The notes beneath the pieces are model-generated. The model worked only from the letters and a program-made list of their open reading frames with translations, made no database searches and was not told the DNA's origin. 64,000 bases of DNA, from NCBI GenBank assembly GCA_033442325.1, contig JAWQFM010000004.1, positions 1,795,393 to 1,859,392 on the forward strand, read 5' to 3'. This document shows, in pieces, positions 15,242-28,668 of this stretch (position 1 is its first letter; each line of letters begins with the position of its first letter). Origin of the DNA: Salpingoeca rosetta. Taxonomy: Eukaryota > Protista > Choanoflagellata. The position numbers and the translations under genes were made by a program.

Positions 15242-16192
15242 CTACTGGTTGCAGTGTTCGCCCGTGCATGTTGAGGGGCAGTTTGCGAGCTCAACCCCTG
15301 CATCCACACACATGCATCCAGATATGGTGACACCAGTGCAATTCACAGAGGTGATGCTGGTTTGGAAGAGAAGAACGTCGCCGTCCACATTGGTGATCTG
15401 GCCAAACTGAAAAGAAGAGAGGGCGGGGTTGCGGGCAATGTACATATTCCCGCCCACGCTGACGATGTTGCCAAAGTCGACCGACGTGAGGACGTTGTAT
15501 CGGAGGCTGAGGAAGCCGCCCACCATCGTCAGTGCGCCAAAGTCGATATCGACTGGCCCGTTGCTGTCGGCATGGATATAGCCACCCACGCGGGTGATGC
15601 GTTTGAAATCCAACAGAGTCAGGTCGTTGTTGTGCAACGACATGTCTCCACCGACGCTTGAGAGCAGGCCAAAGTCGATGAAAGTGAGGTCGTTCCTGGA
15701 CAAGTTCACGTCGCCATCGATGGCTTGCATGACCCCAAACGAGAATGATGTGAGGCCTTGTCCTTCCACGTCGATGTTTCCAGCTTGATCAATGGACACA
15801 GCCACGCCAGGGTTTGCTGCCTGCAGCAAGGTACTGGCCATGACATTCTTCTCGCTTGCCACAGCAGCCAGCACAAGCTGCAACGTGTCTGCGAGTCGAG
15901 CGGTTTCCTGCAGCTGACTTTGCATTTGCTCCACATCGACCCCATTCACCAGCACACGAGGTTGGTGCTTGACATTATTGTTGCTGTTGCTGGCTGTGGT
16001 GGTGCTGATGTGCAGGGTGCCCCACTCGTCCTCCTCAATCACCGCTGCATGTGCGAACAGCGTATTGTTGCTGCTGCTGCTGTTGTGGTTGTTGTGGTTG
16101 GGGATGGTGGTGTACAGCATGCACAGCAGCGCAAGGAGGGCATTGAGTGTGCTGAGTGTGAGGCAAGCGAAAGAGGAAGGACATCGCCTCAT
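15242..16192 (-). CDS. Secreted protein with the same N-terminal stalk module fused to receptor L-domain/Ecm33-like 22-aa repeats and a Cys-rich tail
   Basis: Signal-like N-terminus, then EEDEWGTLHIST...PRVLVNGVDV and a coiled coil. About six repeats of LTxxDFGxxxxVGGxxxxxxN. Five C-terminal Cys. Confidence 0.8.
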   Translation of the reverse strand: MRRCPSSFACLTLSTLNALLALLCMLYTTIPNHNNHNSSSSNNTLFAHAAVIEEDEWGTLHISTTTASNSNNNVKHQPRVLVNGVDVEQMQSQLQETARLADTLQLVLAAVASEKNVMASTLLQAANPGVAVSIDQAGNIDVEGQGLTSFSFGVMQAIDGDVNLSRNDLTFIDFGLLSSVGGDMSLHNNDLTLLDFKRITRVGGYIHADSNGPVDIDFGALTMVGGFLSLRYNVLTSVDFGNIVSVGGNMYIARNPALSSFQFGQITNVDGDVLLFQTSITSVNCTGVTISGCMCVDAGVELANCPSTCTGEHCNQ

Positions 16193-16557
16193 GACTGTAG
16201 GACTGTGAGAGGAGGGGGAGACAGAGGGAGACAGATAGGTGACCTCGTTCTCTCTGCGAGGACCGGGGTCATGGGAAGATGAAGGGGGGAGATGGTAGGA
16301 ATGAGGGATGGTGTGGGTGTGCTGTGCGGACCAAGCACAAACGAACGAACAAGCACAAACACAGCACAGCCAAACGCCTTCTTCTCTGCTTCACTTCTTC
16401 GTGCTGTCTGTGCAGAAGGATGATGTACGATTTCCATCACTTCTCCACACCCACACTCAGCACAACCAGCAAAGAAGCAGGCATCCAGCAAGCCAGCCAG
16501 CAAGCAAGGCAACAAGCAAGCAAGCCTGCCATCACCAGCCCGCGGTTCACAGTCATA

Positions 16558-17805
16558 ATGATGATGATGGCTGCCCGCTTCCAACCCCTCCTGCTGTTGC
16601 TGGTGCTGGTCGTCGTTGCACGCGTGTGCGGGGAGGTGGTATTGGAGGAGGATAAGGAAGGTGCACTGCACATCAACACAAGCGATCCAGAGAAGGAACC
16701 CGTGTTTGTCAATGGCGCGGACATCGGGAAGATGTTCGAGGTGGTGCAGCAGCAGGCCAGCATGTTGGAGGAGCAGATGGGTGTCAACGATGAGCTGCAG
16801 CAGCGCGACGAACAGCAGCAGGAAGCCCTCTGTCGCCGGTTTCCGCCGTCAACAGACACGACCACCCTGGCGAACGTCGGCACAGGAGGCGCCGACTGGC
16901 TTGGTGGCGTGCTGGCAAACAACGGCCTCATCTACGGCATCCCACACCGCTCTGCTTCTGTGCTCATCATCGACCCGACGACCAATGTTGCCGACACAAC
17001 GACCATCCCTGGCTTGGCCCCAGACGCGCGCAAATGGGGCGGTGGCGTGCTGGCACAAGATGGCCTCATATACGCCTTCCCATACGATGCCGAGTCTGTT
17101 CTGATCATCGACCCCATGAGCAACAGCGTGGACAATACTACTTTTAGCGTGCTCCCTTCTGGCACTGGTCAGTGGATCAGCGGCGTGGTGGCTGCTGACA
17201 ACGGCTTGATCTATGGCATCCCGTGGCGTTCCTCATCTGTGTTGATCTTGGACCCATTCATGAAGACAACGGACACCACAACTATGGCTGGGTTTGCAAG
17301 TGGGTGCTGCCAGTGGTATGGCGGGGCGCAGGCGGCCAACGGCCTCATCTACTCCGTTCCACGCGACCCCCAATCCGTGCTCATCATCGACCCAGCCACC
17401 AACACGGCCGACACCACCTCCATCGTGGGGCTCGCAGGCGACGACAAGTGGCAGGGTGCCGTGCGTGCGAGAAATGGCCTCATCTACGGCATCCCTTTCA
17501 AGAGTACATCGGTGCTTGTCATTGATCCAGCCACCAACACCACAGACACGACCTCCATCGCCGGCCTTTCATCTGAGCACGGCAAGTGGCGTGGAGGGTT
17601 GCTGGCGCCAAATGGAAACATCATTGGCATTCCCGCCATGGAGTCAAGCGTGCTCATCGTGGACCCACGCACCAACACAACCAACTTGTTGGAATCATTT
17701 GCTGTGGACGCTGCTGTGGACGCTGGCACCAACAAGTGGTATGATGGTGTGCTTGCCAACAACAACGGCCTCATCTATGGCCTGCCAAGTGGTTCGATGT
17801 TGTGA
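16558..17805 (+). CDS. Beta-propeller family copy 3, truncated in the 7th repeat
   Basis: Signal peptide, EEDKEGALHINTSDP module, coiled coil and six full repeats. The 7th ends GLIYGLPSGSML* and lacks the VLIIDPGC end seen in copies 1 and 2. Confidence 0.8.
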   Translation: MMMMAARFQPLLLLLVLVVVARVCGEVVLEEDKEGALHINTSDPEKEPVFVNGADIGKMFEVVQQQASMLEEQMGVNDELQQRDEQQQEALCRRFPPSTDTTTLANVGTGGADWLGGVLANNGLIYGIPHRSASVLIIDPTTNVADTTTIPGLAPDARKWGGGVLAQDGLIYAFPYDAESVLIIDPMSNSVDNTTFSVLPSGTGQWISGVVAADNGLIYGIPWRSSSVLILDPFMKTTDTTTMAGFASGCCQWYGGAQAANGLIYSVPRDPQSVLIIDPATNTADTTSIVGLAGDDKWQGAVRARNGLIYGIPFKSTSVLVIDPATNTTDTTSIAGLSSEHGKWRGGLLAPNGNIIGIPAMESSVLIVDPRTNTTNLLESFAVDAAVDAGTNKWYDGVLANNNGLIYGLPSGSML

Positions 17806-17990
17806 TGTGACTGGTCTGTGTGTGTGTAAGAGTGTTTGACTGGGACTTAGAGTAGGGTCTTGCTGTATACTGTGCGGGAGACGTAGTCGCAGGTAGTGCG
17901 GTTCATGTCTTCCTCCCCTTAGATCTGCTCTTCCTGCACAATGAGTCAATCGCACCACAGCACTCCGCTCGTGTGGTAGCGTGCTCAAAT
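17798..17990 (-). mobile_element. Possible 3-prime remnant of an LTR retrotransposon (polypurine tract plus short LTR) inserted antisense into propeller copy 3
   Basis: On the minus strand, CTAAGGGGAGGAAGA (PPT-like, ~17923-17908) is followed by TG...CAACA (17905-17798). It ends where propeller homology stops. The upstream frame ends ...LPHER...DLRGG, loosely like copia pol termini. No second LTR or target-site duplication seen. Confidence 0.35.
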
Positions 17991-18446
17991 TAGTTGCACG
18001 TGCATGTCTGTGGGTGACAGAGCATGTCCTACAGACCCACCCTTTTTCGATTCCCTTTCAATGCTTGCTGCCACACGCCAACCTCTGGCCTCTCCACCGT
18101 GACGCTGTGACGTGTGCCGAAGAGAAATCACATCATCCACCAGCAAAGCAAGCAAACATCTATCACACACTCGTTCTGTCAATCTATGCTTGGTCGTTGG
18201 TTCAAGTAAACAAGTCAAATGTCATGAAGACTTGACTGACTCAACCGTTCTTATATCTTGCTTGCTTGCTTGCAAGCACACAAATGCAAACAGAATTGTT
18301 TTGCACTTTGGAAGAGTGGTGCCACGCCCTCCCACAGTGTCTCGCCAAACCATTTCTTTTGTCATTCAACGAACCCTTCCCCACCCCACCCCTCTCTCCC
18401 TCGCCCGCCACTTCACGCCAGCCAGAAACAACGAAGAACAACAGCA

Positions 18447-19670
18447 ATGTGTGCTCTCCAACTTGCTTCGCCACGACCTTGGGTGGACTTGTATGCAGAG
18501 GTGCACAAACGCCCTACACCACAAGGAGGCGGCAGCAACATCTTGGACAATCTGCTTCTGAGGCATGGGCTGTATGAAGTGGGTGAGTCGAAAGATGTGG
18601 GTTCACTGTTTGGTGTGGCTGGCCCAGCCCTGGACAGCTGGATTGAGCGGAACCACAACAGAATCGTCGACGTTGGCGACATCAGGGCTTTGAGGGTGTT
18701 CAAGGGCACCAGCAATCCATGCATGGAAGCCGTGCGTCTGTTGGCGGTAGCGGCGGAACTGCAGAAGACCATCCACGTGTACTCGTACTTGGCCGACGTG
18801 CCGTTCATTGTCCGACCACCACCTGGATACCCTCCATCATCAGAAGTGACAAAGATCATCCACCGCACAGACGGGCACTTTGCCAAAGCCAAATCAGCCT
18901 GGCGGCGTGAAAAGATCCTGGTGCGAGCAACCTCAACGGTAGTGCCGTTTCGCTCTTGTGCCTCTTGTAGCCTTGCACGTCATCTCGGTGACCAGCGCGC
19001 CAGTTTGTTTGCTTGGCCATCTCACACCTTATTCCTTCATTCGCCCACGTGCTTGCGTGTTCTTGTTCTCCTTCAGGCCACACTCAAGAACTTTTTCCTT
19101 CGAGCTGGGAAGGGCAAAGTCATCATCAAAGGTGTTCTTGGAGCCCTTGGATTGACCCTTTTCATTGTCCTGACAGCATTGCTGCTCACATATGGCAGTC
19201 CCGGCACCTGTTCAGACATCAGACTCGAAAATACCAACGACACGATGGAGTACAGTGAGGCATACAAGAACTACGCGCACTGCCTTGCCACACGAAGCCG
19301 ATCGCTGTCCGCCTTGAGCACAAACTTTGGAATTCTGGGAGTGGTTATGGCCATCATGTTATCCCTCATCCAACATCGAAGGGGCCACAGTCTCATCAGA
19401 TCGGGATGGCTGCTGGCGTGCTGGGTTATCCTGTGTTGTGTTGTCATTACATTCACGGTCGCATGGAGCGTCGTGCTGAGAGTTGCGTTCCCGGAGTGCC
19501 CAGACGTACATCTATACCCCAGCAAGATGGACGCTGACTACATCGAGGATCTGGTGACTTGTCGAGAGGCTCGCACGGAGTTCTTTGCGACATTGGCCGA
19601 TGGCATCACAGCAACAATCGCAATCTTTGCGGTGAGCGTGGCCTTGGACAATGGTGGTGCCGAGGACTGA
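18447..19670 (+). CDS. OTU-like (apparently Cys-less) domain fused to a 4-TM region made of a duplicated hairpin
   Basis: ATG 18447; likely in-frame intron 18921-19076 (GTGCGA...TTCAG). OTU-like motifs: PTPQGGGSNIL, EAVRLLAVAAELQKTIHVYS, IIHRTDGHF. Four hydrophobic helices follow. Confidence 0.55.
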   Translation: MCALQLASPRPWVDLYAEVHKRPTPQGGGSNILDNLLLRHGLYEVGESKDVGSLFGVAGPALDSWIERNHNRIVDVGDIRALRVFKGTSNPCMEAVRLLAVAAELQKTIHVYSYLADVPFIVRPPPGYPPSSEVTKIIHRTDGHFAKAKSAWRREKILVRATSTVVPFRSCASCSLARHLGDQRASLFAWPSHTLFLHSPTCLRVLVLLQATLKNFFLRAGKGKVIIKGVLGALGLTLFIVLTALLLTYGSPGTCSDIRLENTNDTMEYSEAYKNYAHCLATRSRSLSALSTNFGILGVVMAIMLSLIQHRRGHSLIRSGWLLACWVILCCVVITFTVAWSVVLRVAFPECPDVHLYPSKMDADYIEDLVTCREARTEFFATLADGITATIAIFAVSVALDNGGAED

Positions 19671-21752
19671 TGGAATACCTCTCGTGTCAACAACACAATC
19701 AACTCAGAGAGGCCGTTCGGGTCGATGCCTGTGATGTGTAGTTATGTACCATTGACTGTTTCATGCTCCCATCTCGTAGTGTGGTGTGGTTGTGGAGTTG
19801 GCGGTGCGGTCGAAGGTTGTTGAGCTGAACTGTTGTACTCGTCTGTGTCATCGACTGCATGCTTGATTCAGCAGGAGCTCACGACCCGTTCAAAATACCA
19901 CAATAAACAACATGAACTCAGCTGACTCTTCCTTTGGTCACCATCAAACACTCAACAAAGACGGGTGAGTGAACACATCGACAGATCGCCGTGCCATCGA
20001 GCATGCGCTAAACAACACCCCAACAACAAACGATACGACACGCTATTCTTCTCTGCGAACCGCCAGCACACAGTCATTTGGTGCACCCCATCACGAACAG
20101 CCGAGCACGTAAATCTCATCCGCCCCCAGCTCCCTGTCTGCAAGCGCTGCGTACGCTGGGAGCGATACTGGTGGTACAGCAGTGCTCGCCGGTGGCGGTG
20201 GTGGTGGTGATGGTGGTGCGAATGATGACGACGACGATGACGACGATGAGGATGGTGATGATGCCACCAAGAAAAGCGAATACAAAAGGGCTGCCCCTGA
20301 ACGTCTGTGGCCCTATCGCTGCAGCCGTATCGGACATGGGTGACGGTGGCGCCGTGTTAGGAAAGGAAGGTGGACAAGCCCTACTGCTGCCGCTGCTTCT
20401 GCTGCCATCACAGCTGTTGTTGCTGTCGTTGCCGTTGCTGCAGATGAGGTCGAGATTTTGGCGTCTGCACTGCAATCCCGCTGCAGCGGTGGCAATGTGC
20501 TTGTGATGATTGGTGTCATTGACAATGTCGGCATCATGGCATGCGTCAGGGACGGTGGTGCGGCTGGTCCGTGTACAGGCGCAGGCAATGCTGGTGGGAA
20601 TGGGCCTGATGCCGCTCCCATATACTGGTTGCAGGAGTGGTTGCCGCGTTGTTCATTGTGGTGGCGCTATCGCGTGTGGTGTGGATGGATGCAACCCTCT
20701 CTGCCATGTCCTCTGCTTCGTGCACGAGTTCTTTCGCCTCCTCGACCACTTCAGCCACGCTCCCCTCCCCAGCCTGCTCTCCTGCGGTCGCCCACGCTGT
20801 ATGACTGCGGGTGGTGGCAGCAATGTCCCATGTGTGCGTTTGTGTGCAAGTGCATGAGCGTGCGCATGCGTGTGATCGAGGAGGAATAAAAGTGATGAAC
20901 AGGGACGTGACTGCAGCCGGCTTACATTGTGTGTGCATGGAGGTTGAGGCGTTGAGCAGGTGCTTGCATGAGAGTCGGGGAGGGGGCGTAGTTGTTGTGG
21001 CCGACGCTTCCTGATAGCAGCAAGGGGGTGGAAAAGGTGGTAGGATTGGATTCGAAGGCAGTGGTGGGTGGAAGCAGTCAGTAGAGTGAGTAGAGTGTAT
21101 TGCATACACACTGTCTTTCTACACACACATTGCTGTTACCTTGCGCTGCCTGCTCCTTCTTCATGTGCAAACTCTCAAAGCAACAGCAGCACGCTGAACA
21201 CGTTCAGCACGTGTGTCATCTTCTTGCACCGCCATGTGTGCGACACAGCGATCACGGTTCCATTGCCCACTGCATCGTGGAGTGGCTGCCACTGCTTGTG
21301 CAACAGATCAATAACACACGCGCAGCAGCTGTCCCTCTTCTATTGTTGTACCACAACAGCGAGCTGCTTGCTGGCTGGCTGGCTGGCGTGTACGCGAGGA
21401 AGGCCTTCCTTGTGATCGCATCCCCAGACCACCACAGTGTGCTTGCTTGTTTTCTTTCCTTTTTGCTTTCTGTCCTTTGCTTCTTGCTTGTTGGCGAAAA
21501 GTGGCGCTCGCATTGACAAAACGCACCACGCTGTTTGCTTCCTTCTTTTGCTTGCCATGTTGACAGAGAAGGAAAATCCTTGCATTTCTGGCAACACCTG
21601 CCACTCGATTTGGAAGCACTTTCCCTCCCTGCAGCAAGCAAGACAATATTTTTTATTGTGCCCTCACACACAAGCAAGACGATTGGTGGGTGTAATTGTC
21701 ACTTTTCGTTCAGGCACCTTCAGCAGAAACAAACCACAACACAACAACAGCG

Positions 21753-22700
21753 ATGGACGAAGTGGATGTGCGGACAGCAGTTGGGGCGGCTTTGACGGCC
21801 GTGGTGGGGGTGTCTCTTCTGTGGCTGATGTTTCTGTTGGGGCGCAGAAAGTCGCGTGAGCAGTTCCAGCACATCACCACCAACCACCCATCATCACTTC
21901 TTCTTGACAGTGTTGTGGCACTCACACAGACACAGGGCAGTCATGATACTGTGGATGAGGACGCGAGTGATGGTGAAGCAGTGCGGTGGAGGTGGTGGCA
22001 GCGGCAGGACAACCAGCTGGACGTGATGGAGCAGTTGATGCAAGAGGCAGGCTTGCAACATCACATCAAGGAACTCCTTCGATCTATCGCATGCGATGAA
22101 CCTGCGAGAGATATAGAGTGTGTTGCAATGTGACTTGCCGGGTTTGCATCATCACCGTTGTGCACATGCAAGCAGTCCTGCATGACATCTCCTGCAAGCG
22201 GTCCAATCATGTAATCAATGTTGTAGCTCGTCTCTGGCCTCTTCCGCACCTTGCACGTTTGAGAACTGACTGGTTGCACCAAACGCCTATTTTGCAGGCT
22301 GATCGGAACGACATTGGGAACCAAAGGCGCACAAAGCTTGGCAATTGCATTCGACAGGAGAAACAACAAAAACATCGAGGTTCTGAGGTGAGCACGCCCA
22401 CAGGCGTAAGTCTGTGATGTTGTGAGTGTTGCGATTCCAAGATATGACGCTTGCGATGTGTTTCCTGGACCATCTCCAGTGTGCAGTGTGTGGTTCGTGC
22501 CTGTAGTATTCATGTGCGCACACGCTTGCACGTCCGGACACACGGACATGGGCACACACACACACACACACACGCACACACACACGCACACACACACGCA
22601 CGCACACACACGCACACCCACCCACCCACACACACGCACACACACACGCACACCCACCCACCCACACACACGCACACACGCACACACACACGCGCGCGCG

Positions 22701-22759
<59 letters not shown>

Positions 22760-22775
22760 GCACACACACGCACAC

Positions 22776-22844
<69 letters not shown>

Positions 22845-25369
22845 CACATGCGTTCCTGTCGTGTTCAGGTTGTACGATAACCTGATTGGATCTGAGGACT
22901 GCGTCCTGTTGGCTGACGCCTTGCAAGGATACACTGATCTACGAGAGCTGCAGTCAGTCAATTGAGTGCAGTGCATACGTCGCAGTCATCCCGAGTGTGA
23001 TCATTGAGGGAACGAGGCATGCGACACGGTGATGGGCTTTCTTGTTGGGATTCTTTCCCTACCACCGGCCATTCTCCTTCTCACGCCTTCGTGTATATTG
23101 CCATTGGTGTCACTCTTTGCAGCATTGGGAACAACCCGATTGGACCTCAAGGCTGTCAAGCGTTGGCGACGGCTCTGCGTGGCCACTCAGAACTGCAGGA
23201 GCTTCTGTGGGTTTCACCCTGTGTGTCAGAATCATGCGTGGGTTATGCTTGTGATCTGACCTCCCTGCTTCTCTGGCGCCTTGCGTGTTGTTGTGGTGCA
23301 TCACAAATTCCATCACAATCACCATGCTGACAGCTCGCATCTCATCATAGCCACATCTCGGCCGCCTCGCCTGCTTTTGTCTTGAATCCACGCGCATGTT
23401 CTCTCGACTTAGGCTGATCAACGTTGGCGTTCCTGCTGCCCACGCAGTTGGTGCAGGGTGGCCAGAAGCACGGGACGTGCAGTGGTACATGTGCGTTCAC
23501 AGCTGCGGCGCTTCTTCATGCTCTGTCGTGTGTTGTACCTGCATTCCTCGCCCTTATGTGGATGAACTCAATTTTCTTTGGTCTGGGCTGGCACTTCTAG
23601 GTCGGAGGAACGAGAATTGACACGCGGCGTTGAACGGGAAGAGCAAGGTAAACCCTCACAAGTTGGTGTTGGTGTTTGTTTTGTTGAGCGGCCTTGTACA
23701 CTGCTCTCATGAGCTCGTGACACGGTAAATACGTGAACGTCACTGTGTCCCCCTTGTGTGGGAAAGGAACTGGTCAGGCCTTGTCATGGTCTTCACATGC
23801 TGACGAGGACGCACATCCGATCGCTGCCTACACTTTCTGTTTCAGCTCTGCCTGGGGTGACTTGTTTTAATCGCCTCGGAAACTGTGTGCCACTCAGCAA
23901 ACCTGCTTCTTCACCGCTCTTGTTTCATGTGCGCTGCTTCAGGCGACCAGCTCGCAGGACATGCAGGTGCTATGAGCACGAAGGAAGAAACAATCAGGCG
24001 GCTCCGTGAGTGCCGATACATGCTGCGAATTGCCTGTGCCCTCTGAGTGACCTCGAGTGACTCTGTGGCACCACTCACACGCCTGTGTTTCGTCTGCATT
24101 GCTTCAGGTGACCAGCTCGCAGAGCATGTAGATGCTATGAGAACGAAGGAAGAAACAATCACACAGCTCAGTGAGTGCCGATGCATGCTGCGAATTGCCT
24201 GTGCCCTCTGAGTGATCTCGCGTGACTCTGTGGCACCACTCACACGCCTGTGTTTCATGTGTGCTGCTTGGTTTGGAAGAACACCAAGTGTGGGAGAGCA
24301 CGTAATAGCTTGCGCGAGCAACAGGCACTTTGTTTTGTCTCCTCTGCCAACATATTTGCCTGCCTGTGTTGTCCTTGTTCATAATTCTCTCACGCCTGGC
24401 TGTGTTTCCCTTCTTTTCGTAGAGTCCCTCTTCAATCTCGACCTGAATCCAGCCCGCTTCGAGGAGAAGAAACGCGCAAAAGACCACGAAGGCAAGCCCA
24501 TCAAGGGCGCATTTGGCAAGCTATATCGCAGCACGTTTGCTGGGCACGACGTGGCGCTGAAGGAAGTTGACGATGTTGAAGAACGACCACGACTGCAGCA
24601 CCTGCTGGAAGCAATGAGCGACACAGCAACTTCAACATCAACAGCGGCACAGTCGCGTGTACCTGACAAGCGTGTGCTGAGAGAGGTGGCCGTCCTTGCC
24701 TCACTTCGCCATCCAAACATCGTGTCTTTTCTCGGGCTGTGTCATGACAGCGATCGCAGCACGCTTGCCTTCGTGCTGAGCTGGGCAGAGAACGGGTCCC
24801 TGTACGACTACATCCACGTGCACAAGAAACACATCAGCAACGTCGAGAAGCTGCGCATCTTGAGCGAGGTGGCGGCTGCGATGGAGTTCCTGCACGCCCA
24901 CGACGTCGTGCACCGCGACCTCAAGTCGCCCAACGTGCTGCTGGACGCATCGCTCTCCGCCAAGGTGGCGGATTTCGGCCTGAGCGCGTTCGTGCCAGAG
25001 AATGCGTCTGTGGTGTCGAAGGTGGTCGGCACACCGCTGTGGGCATCACCGGAGCAGTTGTTGGAGCAGCCATTGCGAGCTGACACGGACGTGTTCTCAT
25101 TTGGCTGCATTATGTGGGAGGTGTGGTTTAACACCAAACCTTGGCACCACGGGGAGTACAGCGGGGAATGCATATCCGGACGAACGCTTGGCGACAAGTA
25201 CAAGGCTCAGGAGTACCTGCCGCTTGATGTTGAGGAGGGGCGGAAAATGGAAGGCGCATTTAAGGCGCTGCTCCGTGGGTGCTTCCAGTCGAGCGGCAAT
25301 CGTGTTGGGTTCTGTCAGTTGCACACGGCCCTGAAGGCGCAACACGACGCTGGCGACCGGCTTTCTTAA
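21753..25369 (+). CDS. N-anchored RNI-type LRR / coiled-coil / TKL-like Ser/Thr protein kinase (8 exons)
   Basis: Phase-consistent exons 21753-22117, 22298-22387, 22869-22952, 23123-23206, 23413-23490, 23601-23647, 23943-24005, 24108-24170, then the kinase exon from 24423. [30 protein letters not shown] exons [27 protein letters not shown] and [27 protein letters not shown]. Kinase motifs [31 protein letters not shown]. Confidence 0.85.
23912..24269 (+). repeat. Tandem 165-bp exon+intron duplication (two full units plus a partial third)
   Basis: 63-nt exons [21 protein letters not shown] and [21 protein letters not shown] start 165 nt apart and are followed by near-identical intron sequence. 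Confidence 0.9.
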
Positions 25370-25728
25370 ATTGGCGAGAAGAAACAGCAGGAGCTGCTTC
25401 ACGGACCACCAGATGCGGTGTGGAAGTTTCCACAGCAGCTGCTGGCCGCGGTGCAAGCGACGGAGCTGTCGACGCGCCAATCCGTCCACATTGCACCACT
25501 TCAACCTGACGAGGACGCCGTCATTGAGGTTTGTGTTTGTGTGTGTGTGGGGGGGGGGTTGTCATGTGTCCTTCGTGTTCTTTGTGTTCTTTGTGTTCTT
25601 TGTATGCTTTGTGTGCTCGGTGTGCGTGCGTGCGCGTGCACGTGTCTTGCTTCTTCACAGTGCACTCAATGACCCCACCTCAGCTTGGTGCTGGCATCTT
25701 GCTCTTCGCCCTTCTCACTTTGGAATCC

Positions 25729-25821
<93 letters not shown>

Positions 25822-26719
25822 GCACGCACTTCCCACCCTGCAGCTCCTCCGCGCCGCTGGTGGCCGCACTGCTGCTGAGCCAAATCCGCTTTGCCCTTTC
25901 GGCCGCATGTTGTGTCGCGTCGCCATCACGTGGTGCGAGCAGAAGCTCGTCGCCTTCAACGGCGCCCTGCACCGCAACAACACCCGCTATCGTGGCCACC
26001 TCACCAGCGCCGGCCACCCGTTTGCGCCCAAATACGCCCACGACACGTTGACGGGCCAGGCAACAGATGCCGAGGAGCGGGCGGTGCTGGAGCGCGTCAC
26101 CCGTTCTGGCCGTCCTGGCGTTTACAACGTGCTTGACACGTCGCGCCTGTACAACATGCTTGACGCGAACTGCGTGGACAAAGATCCGCCCATTCGCCTC
26201 CAGCGCGTGTTCCATGGTGTGAGATCCCTTGAGGCCGTTGTTGGCATCCTGGGCGGTGACTTTGCACAACTGCAGACCCAAGGTGCGAAGTTTGGTGCGG
26301 GCTGTTACTTCACGCCAGACCTTGACTACGCCCTCGCTTACACTTCGCGCTGCCGGCCCAGCCACTCTTCTCCACCTGAACTGCACTGCCTCAAGCTTGA
26401 GCCAGGCAAAGCCTACCGCGTTGTTCTGGCGTGCGATGTCATGTACGGCAACCCGTACCCCGTGACGCACAAGAGCCTTCACCTCACCCGACGACATGAC
26501 CCGGAACGGAAATGGCGGTCATTCCGTGATCAGCCCCTCATCTCCAGACACGACGCTCACGTGGCAGTCATCGATTTCACCAGTGGCGACATTCGACATT
26601 CACAGCCGTTCCACCCACACACGCAGTGGGACCAGGGCGGCAATGTGCCGGCTGCGGAGATCGTAGTGACAGACCCTTCGTGCGTCCTTGTTCGAGCCGT
26701 CCTTGTGTTTGAGGCGTGA
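25370..26719 (+). CDS. PARP-like (ARTD, H-Y-E) ADP-ribosyltransferase domain, in frame with the kinase beyond a single TAA
   Basis: The frame continues IGEKKQQELL...DAVIE. A phase-0 intron at 25529-25843 leads to exon 25844-26719 with VFHGVRS, KFGAGCYFTPDLDYALAY, VVLACDVMYG and AEIVV. Confidence 0.8.
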
Positions 26720-27370
26720 GTGTTTCGAGTCCGCGAATGTGTGCTTGAAGTCTTTGGGCGTGTGTATTGCTTCTGTGTGTGTGTGCGTGTGTGTGTATTG
26801 CTTCTGTGTGTGTGTGTGTGTCCGTGCTGTGATTTGTAGGTCATTGCTGTGCGTGCTTTGCATCCTGTCCGCCACTGAAGTTCGTTCATTTCCATCAGTC
26901 CTCGTCTGTTCTGCTTGTTTGTTTGTGTGGACACCATTCCCATCTCCACTGTCCCCGCATACGCTGTTTTTTCGGTGCCACCGCAATCTCTGTTCCATCC
27001 CGCCCCTCCCTTCACTTTGCTTCGTGATTCTTCTTCCGTCTTTGAGAATCCACTTCATCTCCATCGCATTTCGTTGACGCACGCGTTTCTTCCTCTTGTT
27101 CCCGTGTTTAGTTGTTTGTCGTCTCCATAGAATGTGTGGTGTTTGTTGTGTGGCGTGTTCTGTTTTACCTTGCTTGCCTGGTTTGATTAAACAATGAGTG
27201 AGAAGCGATGTCTCATCCCACCACCACGCCAGAACCACACAAAGTCCTGGTTCAGGATCATCGGACGGAACATGCGTGAGGTTGTCGTTGCGCACTGTTG
27301 CCTTGGCTTGAAAAGTCGTGCAAATCTTTCGCTTCACACACAAACACAAACAACAACCCACTGCAACAAA

Positions 27371-28668
27371 ATGGCGGCGGCTGTCCTCCCACAGCTCCCA
27401 CAGCTCCCACAGCTCCTCCTCCATGATGCTGCCGTTTTGTCGGCTGTGTTCTTCCTGGTTGTGTGCGCGTGCCTATCGCCACACCACCAACACCAAACAG
27501 GGCCAAGCTGGCGCAAGATGATAACGGTGCTGTGCACGTCAACTCGAGTGACCCAGCAACCCAGCCCGTGTTCCTTAATGGCGTCAACGTCGTTTCGGAG
27601 ATGCAAACGCTGCGTGGAACCGTGGTGGCACAGCAGAGCATCTTGCAGGCGTACCAGTCAACGGTTCAAGCACAGCAGAGCATGATTGCCGCACAGAACA
27701 GCACGCTTCAATCCCAGCAGAGCATGATCGCCGCTCTTCGAGGCAGGGTGTGTGAGGCGACTGCCAGCACGTTTGGGCAACTCGGCTCCTCTTCATACAA
27801 GTGGCGTGGCGGCGTTTTGGCCAACAACGGCCTGATCTATGCGGCCCCGCACAACTCACCTTCCGTCCTCATCATCGACCCCAGGACCAACACGGTCGAC
27901 ACGTCCTCCATCTCCGGCTTTGGCACAGCCACATACAAGTGGGCGGGTGCCGTTTTGGCGCATGCAGGTCCCATCTACATGTTCCCGTCGAACAGCGCAA
28001 GCATGCTCATTATCAACCCCGACACCAATACGGCTGACACCACAAGCATCCACTCGCTTGGCACCAGTGCGCGCAAGTGGTACAGCGGTGTGGTGGCTGA
28101 CAACGGACTCATCTTCGGCGTCCCTTATTTTGCCGCGTCTGTGCTCATCATTGATCCTGAGACCAACACAGCAGACACCACAACATTGGGCGGGCTGTCT
28201 TCGGATGCATTCAAGTGGTATGGCGGCGTTCAGGCGCCCAACGGTCTCATCTACTGCGTTCCCGTGACAGCTTCCTCTGTCCTCATCATCAATCCAGAGT
28301 CGCTGACGATGGATGTCACCACAATTCAAGGACTTGGCACAGGTGGCTACAAGTGGCATGGCGGTGTGCTTGCGCAAAATGGGCTCATCTACACCATCCC
28401 ATACAGTTCCACGGCCACGCTCGTCATCAACCCGAACACCAACATCGCCGAGGAGCTGCCTGTCGCCCAGGTCTGCGGGTTCAGGAAAGCTGGCGGCGTG
28501 CTCGCACCCAACGGCGACATTGTCGGCATCCCCCTCGGCGCCCCATCGGCTCTCATCATCGATCCCACACGAACACAACAGACACAGCGACCAACGTGCA
28601 CTATTGCCCCTCCCATCGGTGGCCGTCCTACGCTGCTAGCCCTGATGCCCTCACTCCTCTTGTTATAA
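27371..28668 (+). pseudogene. Beta-propeller family copy 4, disrupted
   Basis: The signal peptide from ATG 27371 is out of frame with the QDDNGAVHVNSSDP module (~27490). Repeat 6 lacks its Trp. A frameshift occurs at ~28568 (DPT-TNTTDT) and homology is lost after ~28597. Confidence 0.8.

Follow-up and report, generated by a model that had tools for sequence, protein, structure and literature searches.

Choanoflagellates have proteins of their own, the "Kinase TLRs" and "Kinase TIRs", in which leucine-rich repeats (LRRs), a transmembrane segment (TM), a kinase and a TIR domain stand on one chain in the order LRR-TM-kinase-TIR, an arrangement proposed to provide streamlined signalling (Richter et al. 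2018, PMC6040629; PARPs and ADP-ribosylation are mentioned nowhere in that paper). Eight PARP types are recorded for choanoflagellates in a survey of PARPs across life, and kinase fusion is absent from the examined passages of that survey. Here we describe a gene of the choanoflagellate Salpingoeca rosetta that lies at positions 21753-26719 of a stretch of 64,000 nucleotides (nt) of contig JAWQFM010000004.1 (assembly GCA_033442325.1; the whole stretch is called the window below) and corresponds to the public protein P0046. Its exons encode, in order, an N-terminal TM, LRRs, a coiled coil, a kinase of the TKL group, a linker and a C-terminal domain with the predicted fold of a PARP-type ADP-ribosyltransferase (ART). 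We consider it likely that the gene belongs to a family of proteins built as repeats, coiled coil, TKL kinase, linker and ART, the named members of which are choanoflagellate, and that the reference copy carries a nonsense codon.

Several described systems resemble the gene in part. Like the Kinase TLRs and Kinase TIRs it is a choanoflagellate single chain that pairs LRRs and a kinase with an immune-type output domain; those proteins have extracellular LRRs, a TM mid-chain and a TIR output, whereas here the TM stands at the N-terminus, in front of RNI-type LRRs that are predicted to be cytosolic, and the output domain is an ART. The ROCO/LRRK proteins (LRR-Roc-COR-kinase) likewise have a TKL kinase behind LRR or ankyrin repeats, and one relative of the window gene, P0009, has Roc-COR; P0046, however, has neither Roc nor COR by Pfam and a coiled coil in place of the GTPase switch, and P0009 is without a kinase. 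Raf-like MAP3Ks (Arabidopsis CTR1/EDR1, RAF, MAP3K12) have some of the closest kinase domains, with a catalytic loop of the HRDLKSPN type in common, but identity is only about 30%, their N-terminal regulatory part is a different one and they carry no ART. NLR receptors are also cytosolic multidomain proteins that combine RNI-type LRRs with an effector domain and form lineage-expanded families with young damaged copies, but a NACHT or NB-ARC ATPase was not found in P0046 (no Pfam match at E<=0.01). Tankyrase (Ank-SAM-PARP), finally, has the same general plan, repeats followed by an oligomerising segment and an ART at the C-terminus. We know of no characterised PARP that is fused behind a protein kinase.

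The locus and its family

Joined as in the public model, eleven exons reproduce P0046 exactly (918 amino acids (aa), annotated as "TKL protein kinase"), and the contig that encodes this protein, GL832960.1:1416694-1421660 of GCA_000188695.1, is identical to the window sequence letter for letter; the kinase-ART candidate is therefore a gene that the annotation of the S. rosetta reference genome already contains. P0046 was reached through a search with the longer isoform of a 97%-identical S. rosetta relative of the last-exon product. In our own splice reconstruction of 21753-26719 the introns are GT-AG throughout and the splice phases agree along the chain, so the exon chain proposed in a preliminary description of this DNA is present as given there. 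The G+C content of the region is about 55%, and (CA)n microsatellites lie within introns. The features of the gene are these:

21753-22117, 22298-22387, 22869-22952, 23123-23206, 23413-23490, 23601-23647, plus strand: exon join of P0046, exons 1-6
23943-24005, 24108-24170, 24423-25313, 25413-25528, 25844-26719, plus strand: exon join of P0046, exons 7-11
21753-22117, plus strand: exon 1, with start ATG, signal-anchor TM, GRRK, a low-complexity acidic region and the N-terminal helix conserved in the family; use of the donor at 22118 gives P0046, and an alternative in-phase donor lies at 22130
22298-22387, plus strand: first RNI-type LRR exon, 90 nt, phase 2; Pfam LRR_6/LRR_4 weak in P0046
22550-22850, no strand assigned: CA-rich microsatellite in intron 2, seen in the sequence
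22869-22952, plus strand: second RNI-type LRR exon, 84 nt, phase 2
23123-23206, plus strand: third RNI-type LRR exon, 84 nt, phase 2
23413-23490, plus strand: fourth, LRR-like capping exon, conserved in P0003 and P0044
23601-23647, plus strand: first coiled-coil exon
23943-24005 and 24108-24170, plus strand: two 63-nt coiled-coil exons, phase 1, 21 aa and three heptads each
24423-25366, plus strand: kinase exon, 944 nt to the stop codon (Pfam Pkinase; VALK, HRDLKSPN, DFG and SPE motifs)
25314-25412, plus strand: 99-nt "intron" of the public model, GTCAGT...CAG, which skips the TAA; probably an annotation artefact
25367-25369, plus strand: in-frame TAA after codon 606, context TCT TAA ATT; CAA in the paralog
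25370-25528, plus strand: conserved linker between kinase and ART, 53 codons, in the frame of the kinase; donor GT at 25529
25733-25818, no strand assigned: (CA)n microsatellite in the last intron, seen in the sequence
25844-26719, plus strand: last exon, with the predicted PARP-type ART domain, 291 aa and TGA (Pfam PARP 2.5e-5, AlphaFold2, Foldseek, VIA-align)

With the ART domain as query, 43 proteins were found among 1.84 billion representatives. The named matches are choanoflagellate only, comprising at least 14 proteins of S. rosetta together with proteins of Microstomoeca roanoka and Didymoeca costata, and the remainder come from environmental contigs. Most S. rosetta members have the architecture LRR-coiled coil-kinase-ART, those of M. 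roanoka have ankyrin repeats in front (Ank-coiled coil-kinase-ART), and P0009 is built as LRR-Roc-COR-TIR-ART. The M. roanoka proteins hold kinase and ART in a single open reading frame and are derived from a transcriptome, so in that species kinase and ART lie on one mRNA. In P0009 (S. rosetta PTSG_11903, 1728 aa) the domains LRR_6, Roc, COR-A and TIR are followed by the ART at residues 1298-1556, and the occurrence of the ART there without a kinase makes it a portable C-terminal module. By analogy, the lineage-specific expansion, module swapping, variable repeat number and young damaged copies of the family resemble those of fast-evolving recognition and conflict families. Full-text searches of the literature turned up no report of a kinase fused to a PARP in choanoflagellates. 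The architecture had been called unfamiliar in the preliminary description, and in the sense that no published description was found this stands; it is not unique, as the family is a real, multigene one whose member proteins are public and named only as kinases ("TKL protein kinase").

The closest paralog of the window gene (P0044/P0001) is found on the same supercontig at a distance of 700 kb, at L001:8001-13612 (GL832960.1:711179-716790), within a segmental duplication of about 13 kb that pairs window positions 15805-28593 with L001 802-15566. Exons of the two copies are 98-99% identical and introns 90-92%, and the ratio of non-synonymous to synonymous differences between them (pN/pS) comes to 0.24 for the ART exon and 0.42 for the kinase exon. 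The paralog is damaged too: 2 nt are missing (AGAG to AG) directly behind the DFG motif, at the equivalent of window positions 24997-24998, and its public models P0044 and P0001 mask this deletion by an intron that removes 12 aa.

Domains of the encoded chain

The hydrophobic segment at the head of the chain that was noted in the preliminary description covers residues 9-29 (nt 21777-21839), with a Kyte-Doolittle 19-residue mean of 2.25 and GRRK directly after it. It is the sole hydrophobic segment of the protein and lies N-terminal to the LRRs; the layout of LRR receptor kinases and TLRs, with a TM between LRRs and kinase, is not found. On its N-terminal side the segment is flanked by acidic sequence (MDEVDVRT) and on its C-terminal side by basic sequence (GRRKSRE), and because of these flanks of a single N-terminal TM the positive-inside rule predicts that LRRs, kinase and ART all lie on the cytosolic side, where ATP and NAD+ are available, in agreement with the topology first suggested. 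Within the family such an anchor occurs only in P0046 and its close paralog P0044, and in this pair it should hold the chain at a membrane, on the cytosolic side.

The LRR exons carry a pattern of 28-30 residues, L..N.IG..GA..LA.AL. In P0046 itself the Pfam model LRR_6 scores 19.9 bits against a gathering cut-off of 23.4, and it exceeds the cut-off in the paralogs P0003 (43.1 bits), P0047 (62.7 bits) and P0009 (61.8 bits), which supports the RNI type first assigned to these repeats; their number, given at first as three, overlooked the fourth, LRR-like exon at 23413-23490. The duplicated coiled-coil exon was read correctly, the two 63-nt copies being part of a tandem unit of 165 nt that consists of the 63-nt exon (21 aa, three heptads) and a 102-nt intron. 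There are 2.1 copies of this unit in the window (23921-24269) against 7.0 in the paralog (L001 9986-11146), and the public model of the paralog uses just four of the unit exons there.

Judged by its motifs, the kinase is a catalytically complete, Raf/CTR1-like member of the TKL group, much as it was first described. Pfam Pkinase matches at 4.6e-43 (147.9 bits, cut-off 31.7); VALK (24551), HRDLKSPN (24911-24934), DFG (24971-24979) and SPE (25046-25054) are in place, and the set of catalytic Lys, alpha-C Glu, HRD, DFG and APE-like motifs is complete. The best named relatives in the PDB are CTR1, RAF, JAK2 and MAP3K12.

For the C-terminal domain, a profile of the 38-sequence family alignment run against the PDB ranks PARPs at the top (E from 9e-4 upward), with matches to PARP4, ZAP, PARP12, PARP10 and PARP16 at E 9e-4 to 0.1 and further ones to PARP15 and the tankyrases. 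In these alignments VFHG falls on the H-G motif of the PARPs and ZAP, and GAGCYF...DYALAY falls on G-x-G-x-Y-F...Y. The family profile was required, as phmmer with the ART exon product as single query yielded nothing from the PDB beyond chance matches to Cry3A (E 0.12). AlphaFold2, supplied with the family alignment, models the domain with a pLDDT of 91.4 and a pTM of 0.91. Foldseek returns 310 matches to the model at E<=1e-3, and each of the 50 matches listed is a PARP catalytic domain; with VIA-align the model superposes on PARP12/14/15/10 and tankyrase at Z 13-14, with an rmsd of 2.5 A over about 157 of about 185 residues, and its nearest clusters in the ESM atlas are PF00644 without exception. 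The ART fold proposed for the product of this exon is thus what the modelling returns.

The three motifs taken at the outset for the H-Y-E triad of PARP-family enzymes (VFHG / FGAGCYF / AEIVV) also hold up. VFHG at 26207-26218 contains H124, GAGCYF at 26294-26311 contains Y155 and AEIVV at 26654-26668 contains E272, and the three residues lie on the expected strands of the model (118-126, 152-157 and 269-275, the last being the penultimate strand), with the H and the Y aligned to those of PARPs by the profile. Y155 is invariant in the family and E272 is kept in at least 90% of members; from its position we infer that E272 is equivalent to the PARP Glu. At the level of the predicted fold, the C-terminal domain is confirmed as a PARP-type ADP-ribosyltransferase fold that keeps H-Y-E and forms a divergent branch.

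That fold is, by prediction, shared with the mono-ADP-ribosylating PARPs (PARP10/12/14/15) and tankyrase, and H-G, G-x-G-x-Y-F, a second Y and E-x-V-V follow one another in the matching order. The domain differs from PARPs in that it is only 11-19% identical to them, has a sub-domain of its own of about 110 residues, confidently folded in the model, in front of the PARP-like region, carries the motifs NPYP and HDAH, which are invariant in the family and to our knowledge not known from PARPs, and stands behind a protein kinase. The triad of PARP10/12/14/15 is H-Y-I/L, in contrast to the H-Y-E found here. An H-Y-E triad is compatible with either mono- or poly-ADP-ribosylation, and NAD+ hydrolysis or mere binding may also be possible. 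We compared the domain with one further ART type, the bacterial toxin-type Tox-ART-HYD2, for which a motif set of H, D, GFY, W and R and an occurrence in choanoflagellates have been given (Zhang et al. 2012, PMC3482391). This identity, compared by published motif only, was not adopted: the motifs of the family are H, G-x-G-x-YF, Y and E, and in structure it comes nearest to PARPs.

The stop codon and the competing readings

The frame of the kinase closes at the TAA at 25367-25369, and the linker and the ART continue beyond it in the identical frame, with 344 codons open behind the stop. Because the linker shares the frame of the kinase, the join between them is not a splice and needs either read-through or the public model's 99-nt intron. 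As written, the reference copy encodes a 606-aa TM-LRR-coiled coil-kinase protein without the ART. The single-chain kinase-ART protein of the preliminary description therefore survives as a chain of exons but not as one polypeptide at this locus, where the TAA uncouples kinase and ART.

Read evidence comes from a comparison of 24270-25725 (1,456 letters, (CA)n introns excluded) with two raw RNA runs and two contig sets. X1 behaves as RNA, with a spliced joint and no intron depth, and X2 behaves as DNA. RNA contigs join a coiled-coil exon straight to 24423, and RNA depth ceases near 25528-25543, beyond which the DNA contigs continue, as expected for a donor at 25529. The public joint 25313/25413 is absent from two RNA read sets and from the RNA contigs. 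All contigs over 25367 read C and have 11-17 further differences from the window within 490 nt. Some of their letters are those of one or the other reference copy and some match neither copy but other family members; being simplified or mosaic, such contigs are no evidence for the absence of the T at 25367.

Two side observations were made in the same reads. Four reads in X21 and one X1 contig join 24322/24324 to 24421/24423, which would be a GC-AG intron if placed at 24325-24422; the extra exon 24262-24324 shifts the frame and leaves the kinase exon out of frame, and it is either a truncating isoform or the transcript of a close copy. Position 24523 is G in five of five RNA reads and in both contig sets and A in both reference copies. 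This, taken with the mosaic letters, suggests a difference at this locus between present-day cultures and the 2011 reference, or the existence of a third close copy.

How the stop codon is to be read depends on three accounts, of which that of the public model is very improbable. It has a real intron at 25314-25412 that removes the stop and yields the 918-aa P0046; GTCAGT...CAG are usable signals, the removal preserves the frame and the result matches the deposited annotation. But the 33 codons that would be removed include the last helix of the kinase (F.QLH.ALK.Q) and the motif LLHGPPDA.WKF, both of which are kept in 13 of the 13 relatives aligned, another genus included, and the paralog retains the stretch as coding sequence with CAA (Q) in place of TAA. 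The acceptor lacks the pyrimidine tract typical of real introns, the joint of 25313 to 25413 was found in neither RNA reads nor RNA contigs, and an RNA contig over the homologous kinase-linker stretch is unspliced and continuous. In the same annotation the 2-nt deletion of the paralog is masked by another invented intron, each copy of the pair thus carrying one disabling lesion in the reference that an invented intron hides. On account of the conserved codons, the coding state of the paralog, the poor acceptor and the missing RNA joint, we regard the 99-nt intron as probably an annotation artefact. All in-frame GT..AG mini-introns that would skip the TAA were enumerated; none has the pyrimidine-rich acceptor of the real introns, and the best of them is the public one, rejected on conservation. 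An alternative genetic code or programmed read-through is unsupported, given that TAA-A is a strong terminator and that S. rosetta is annotated with the standard code.

A second account, which we hold to be possible and advance tentatively, is that the gene is intact, the T at 25367 being either a wrong base in the 2011 reference or an allele private to it, and that it encodes a TM-LRR-coiled coil-kinase-linker-ART protein of about 951 aa. The C in all contigs across 25367, from the RNA run X1 and the DNA run X2 alike, argues for it, as do the CAA at the same codon in the paralog, the 344 open codons after the stop with a pN/pS of 0.24 in the ART exon, and the fact that the highest share of the 31-mers of this stretch in any public run is 0.66. 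On the other hand, the C-bearing contigs differ at 11-17 other places in 490 nt and are simplified and mosaic or derived from the paralog, a lone C-to-T substitution is atypical as a consensus error, and the paralog is damaged too, which fits a birth-and-death turnover of the family. The third account, to which we give a substantial chance that still falls short of even, takes the stop as real: the locus would then have two products or be a decaying gene, with an anchored LRR-coiled coil-kinase protein and an ART that is made by rare read-through or internal initiation (an in-frame ATG near 25906 is a possible start) or is lost to nonsense-mediated decay (NMD). In NMD that depends on the exon junction complex, a stop well upstream of the last exon junction triggers decay, and the TAA lies 159 nt upstream of that junction, a classic position. 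No RNA reads with the letters of the window copy were found at the low coverage available, and short proteins predicted to consist of the ART only (P0002 and the environmental P0018-P0024) exist and may be stand-alone proteins or partial models. Against this account, TAA followed by A is a strong termination context, which makes read-through unlikely, no promoter or separate transcript of the ART exon has been shown, and the coverage is too low to judge expression. The low pN/pS between the copies implies that purifying selection has acted on the ART part during most of the period after the duplication; the nonsense lesion must then be young, or else specific to the reference, and the 344 codons behind it look selected.

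We return to the reading that we favour, of P0046 as a member of a kinase-ART family whose reference copy has a nonsense codon. Several observations weigh against it. Pfam PARP (PF00644) gives the last-exon product 24.3 bits (2.5e-5) under a gathering cut-off of 26.7 and the whole of P0046 21.4 bits, also below the cut-off; the gathering score is reached only in the environmental relative P0029 (32.1 bits), and for this reason the ART assignment rests on fold prediction. Of the Pfam models expected in the spliced protein, then, Pkinase matches above its cut-off, and PARP and LRR_6 fall under theirs. The H of the triad is replaced in P0021-P0023, P0030 and P0031, so that some members may be inactive. 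Raw RNA depth at the stop codon is 0 to 0.65, and the window copy's own letters at 24303, 24725, 24820 and 25367 occur in no read or contig of the four runs. The splice from 25528 to 25844, the junction of which lies outside the compared stretch, rests on the drop in RNA depth and on conservation in paralogs, where the peptide that spans the linker-ART junction is kept as ...DAV[IT]E|LL[RH]AAGG..., and has further support from the transcriptome-derived M. roanoka proteins with kinase and ART in one reading frame. Some of these points also bear on whether the C-terminal domain is PARP-folded yet is no protein ADP-ribosyltransferase and has another role, as a binder of NAD+ or ADP-ribose, an NADase or a modifier of nucleic acids, that regulates the kinase or is regulated by it. 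The strong divergence from PARPs, the scores below the Pfam cut-off, the extra part of about 110 residues, the invariant NPYP and HDAH motifs, the missing H in some members and the combination of the domain with TIR in P0009 are in keeping with such a role; the retention of H, G-x-G-x-Y-F, the second Y and E in most members, P0046 included, is the pattern of an active H-Y-E enzyme, and we think the other role unlikely.

In the neighbourhood of the two copies, the gene downstream of the window copy (27463-28668) encodes a repeat protein with the pattern NGLIY..P...S.LIIDP.TNT (Pfam DUF5074, 4.8e-10) and was duplicated along with the kinase-ART gene. About 3 kb downstream of the paralog, at L001:16507-21612, lies a TRPM2-like gene (LSDAT, TRPM2, Ion_trans, NUDT9/NUDIX), a neighbour that the window copy does not have; TRPM2-like proteins have been studied in choanoflagellates as part of a family of ADP-ribose-gated channel-enzymes (PMC11479946), and the position of an ART gene next to the gene of an ADP-ribose-gated channel may be coincidence.

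Proposed mechanism and meaning for the family

In intact members of the family, the repeats, whether LRR or ankyrin, would recognise a partner or ligand and hold back the enzymatic parts, the coiled coil would oligomerise the chains, the Raf-like kinase would be turned on by clustering, and the ART would then spend NAD+ to ADP-ribosylate itself or nearby targets. Such a protein would be sensor, kinase and effector on one chain, in the spirit of the choanoflagellate Kinase TLR and Kinase TIR proteins. The preliminary description went further and suggested that the protein may be a sensor tethered to a phagosome or organelle and may couple phosphorylation to ADP-ribosylation or NAD+ use. A hitherto unrecognised class of intracellular receptors along these lines, in which ligands of microbial or stress origin are sensed by variable LRR or ankyrin modules, the kinase licenses ADP-ribosylation or NAD+ use and the TM pair sits on, for example, the phagosome membrane, may be put forward only as a speculative and rather improbable proposal.

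The interest of the finding resides in the family more than in the window copy. Both close paralogs have in the reference a disabling lesion, a nonsense codon in one and a 2-nt deletion in the other, that their public models conceal, and both models need correction. A family that unites recognition repeats, an oligomerising coiled coil, a kinase and a PARP-like enzyme in a single chain would widen the range of the "streamlined" LRR/TIR-kinase proteins of choanoflagellates, and the PARP superfamily would gain a kinase-coupled branch, one that PARP surveys have probably missed because its scores lie under the Pfam cut-off. If the receptor class just sketched exists, the link between PARPs and innate immunity would have a non-animal origin. 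The family would also give testable candidates for the sensing of microbes by bacterivorous choanoflagellates.

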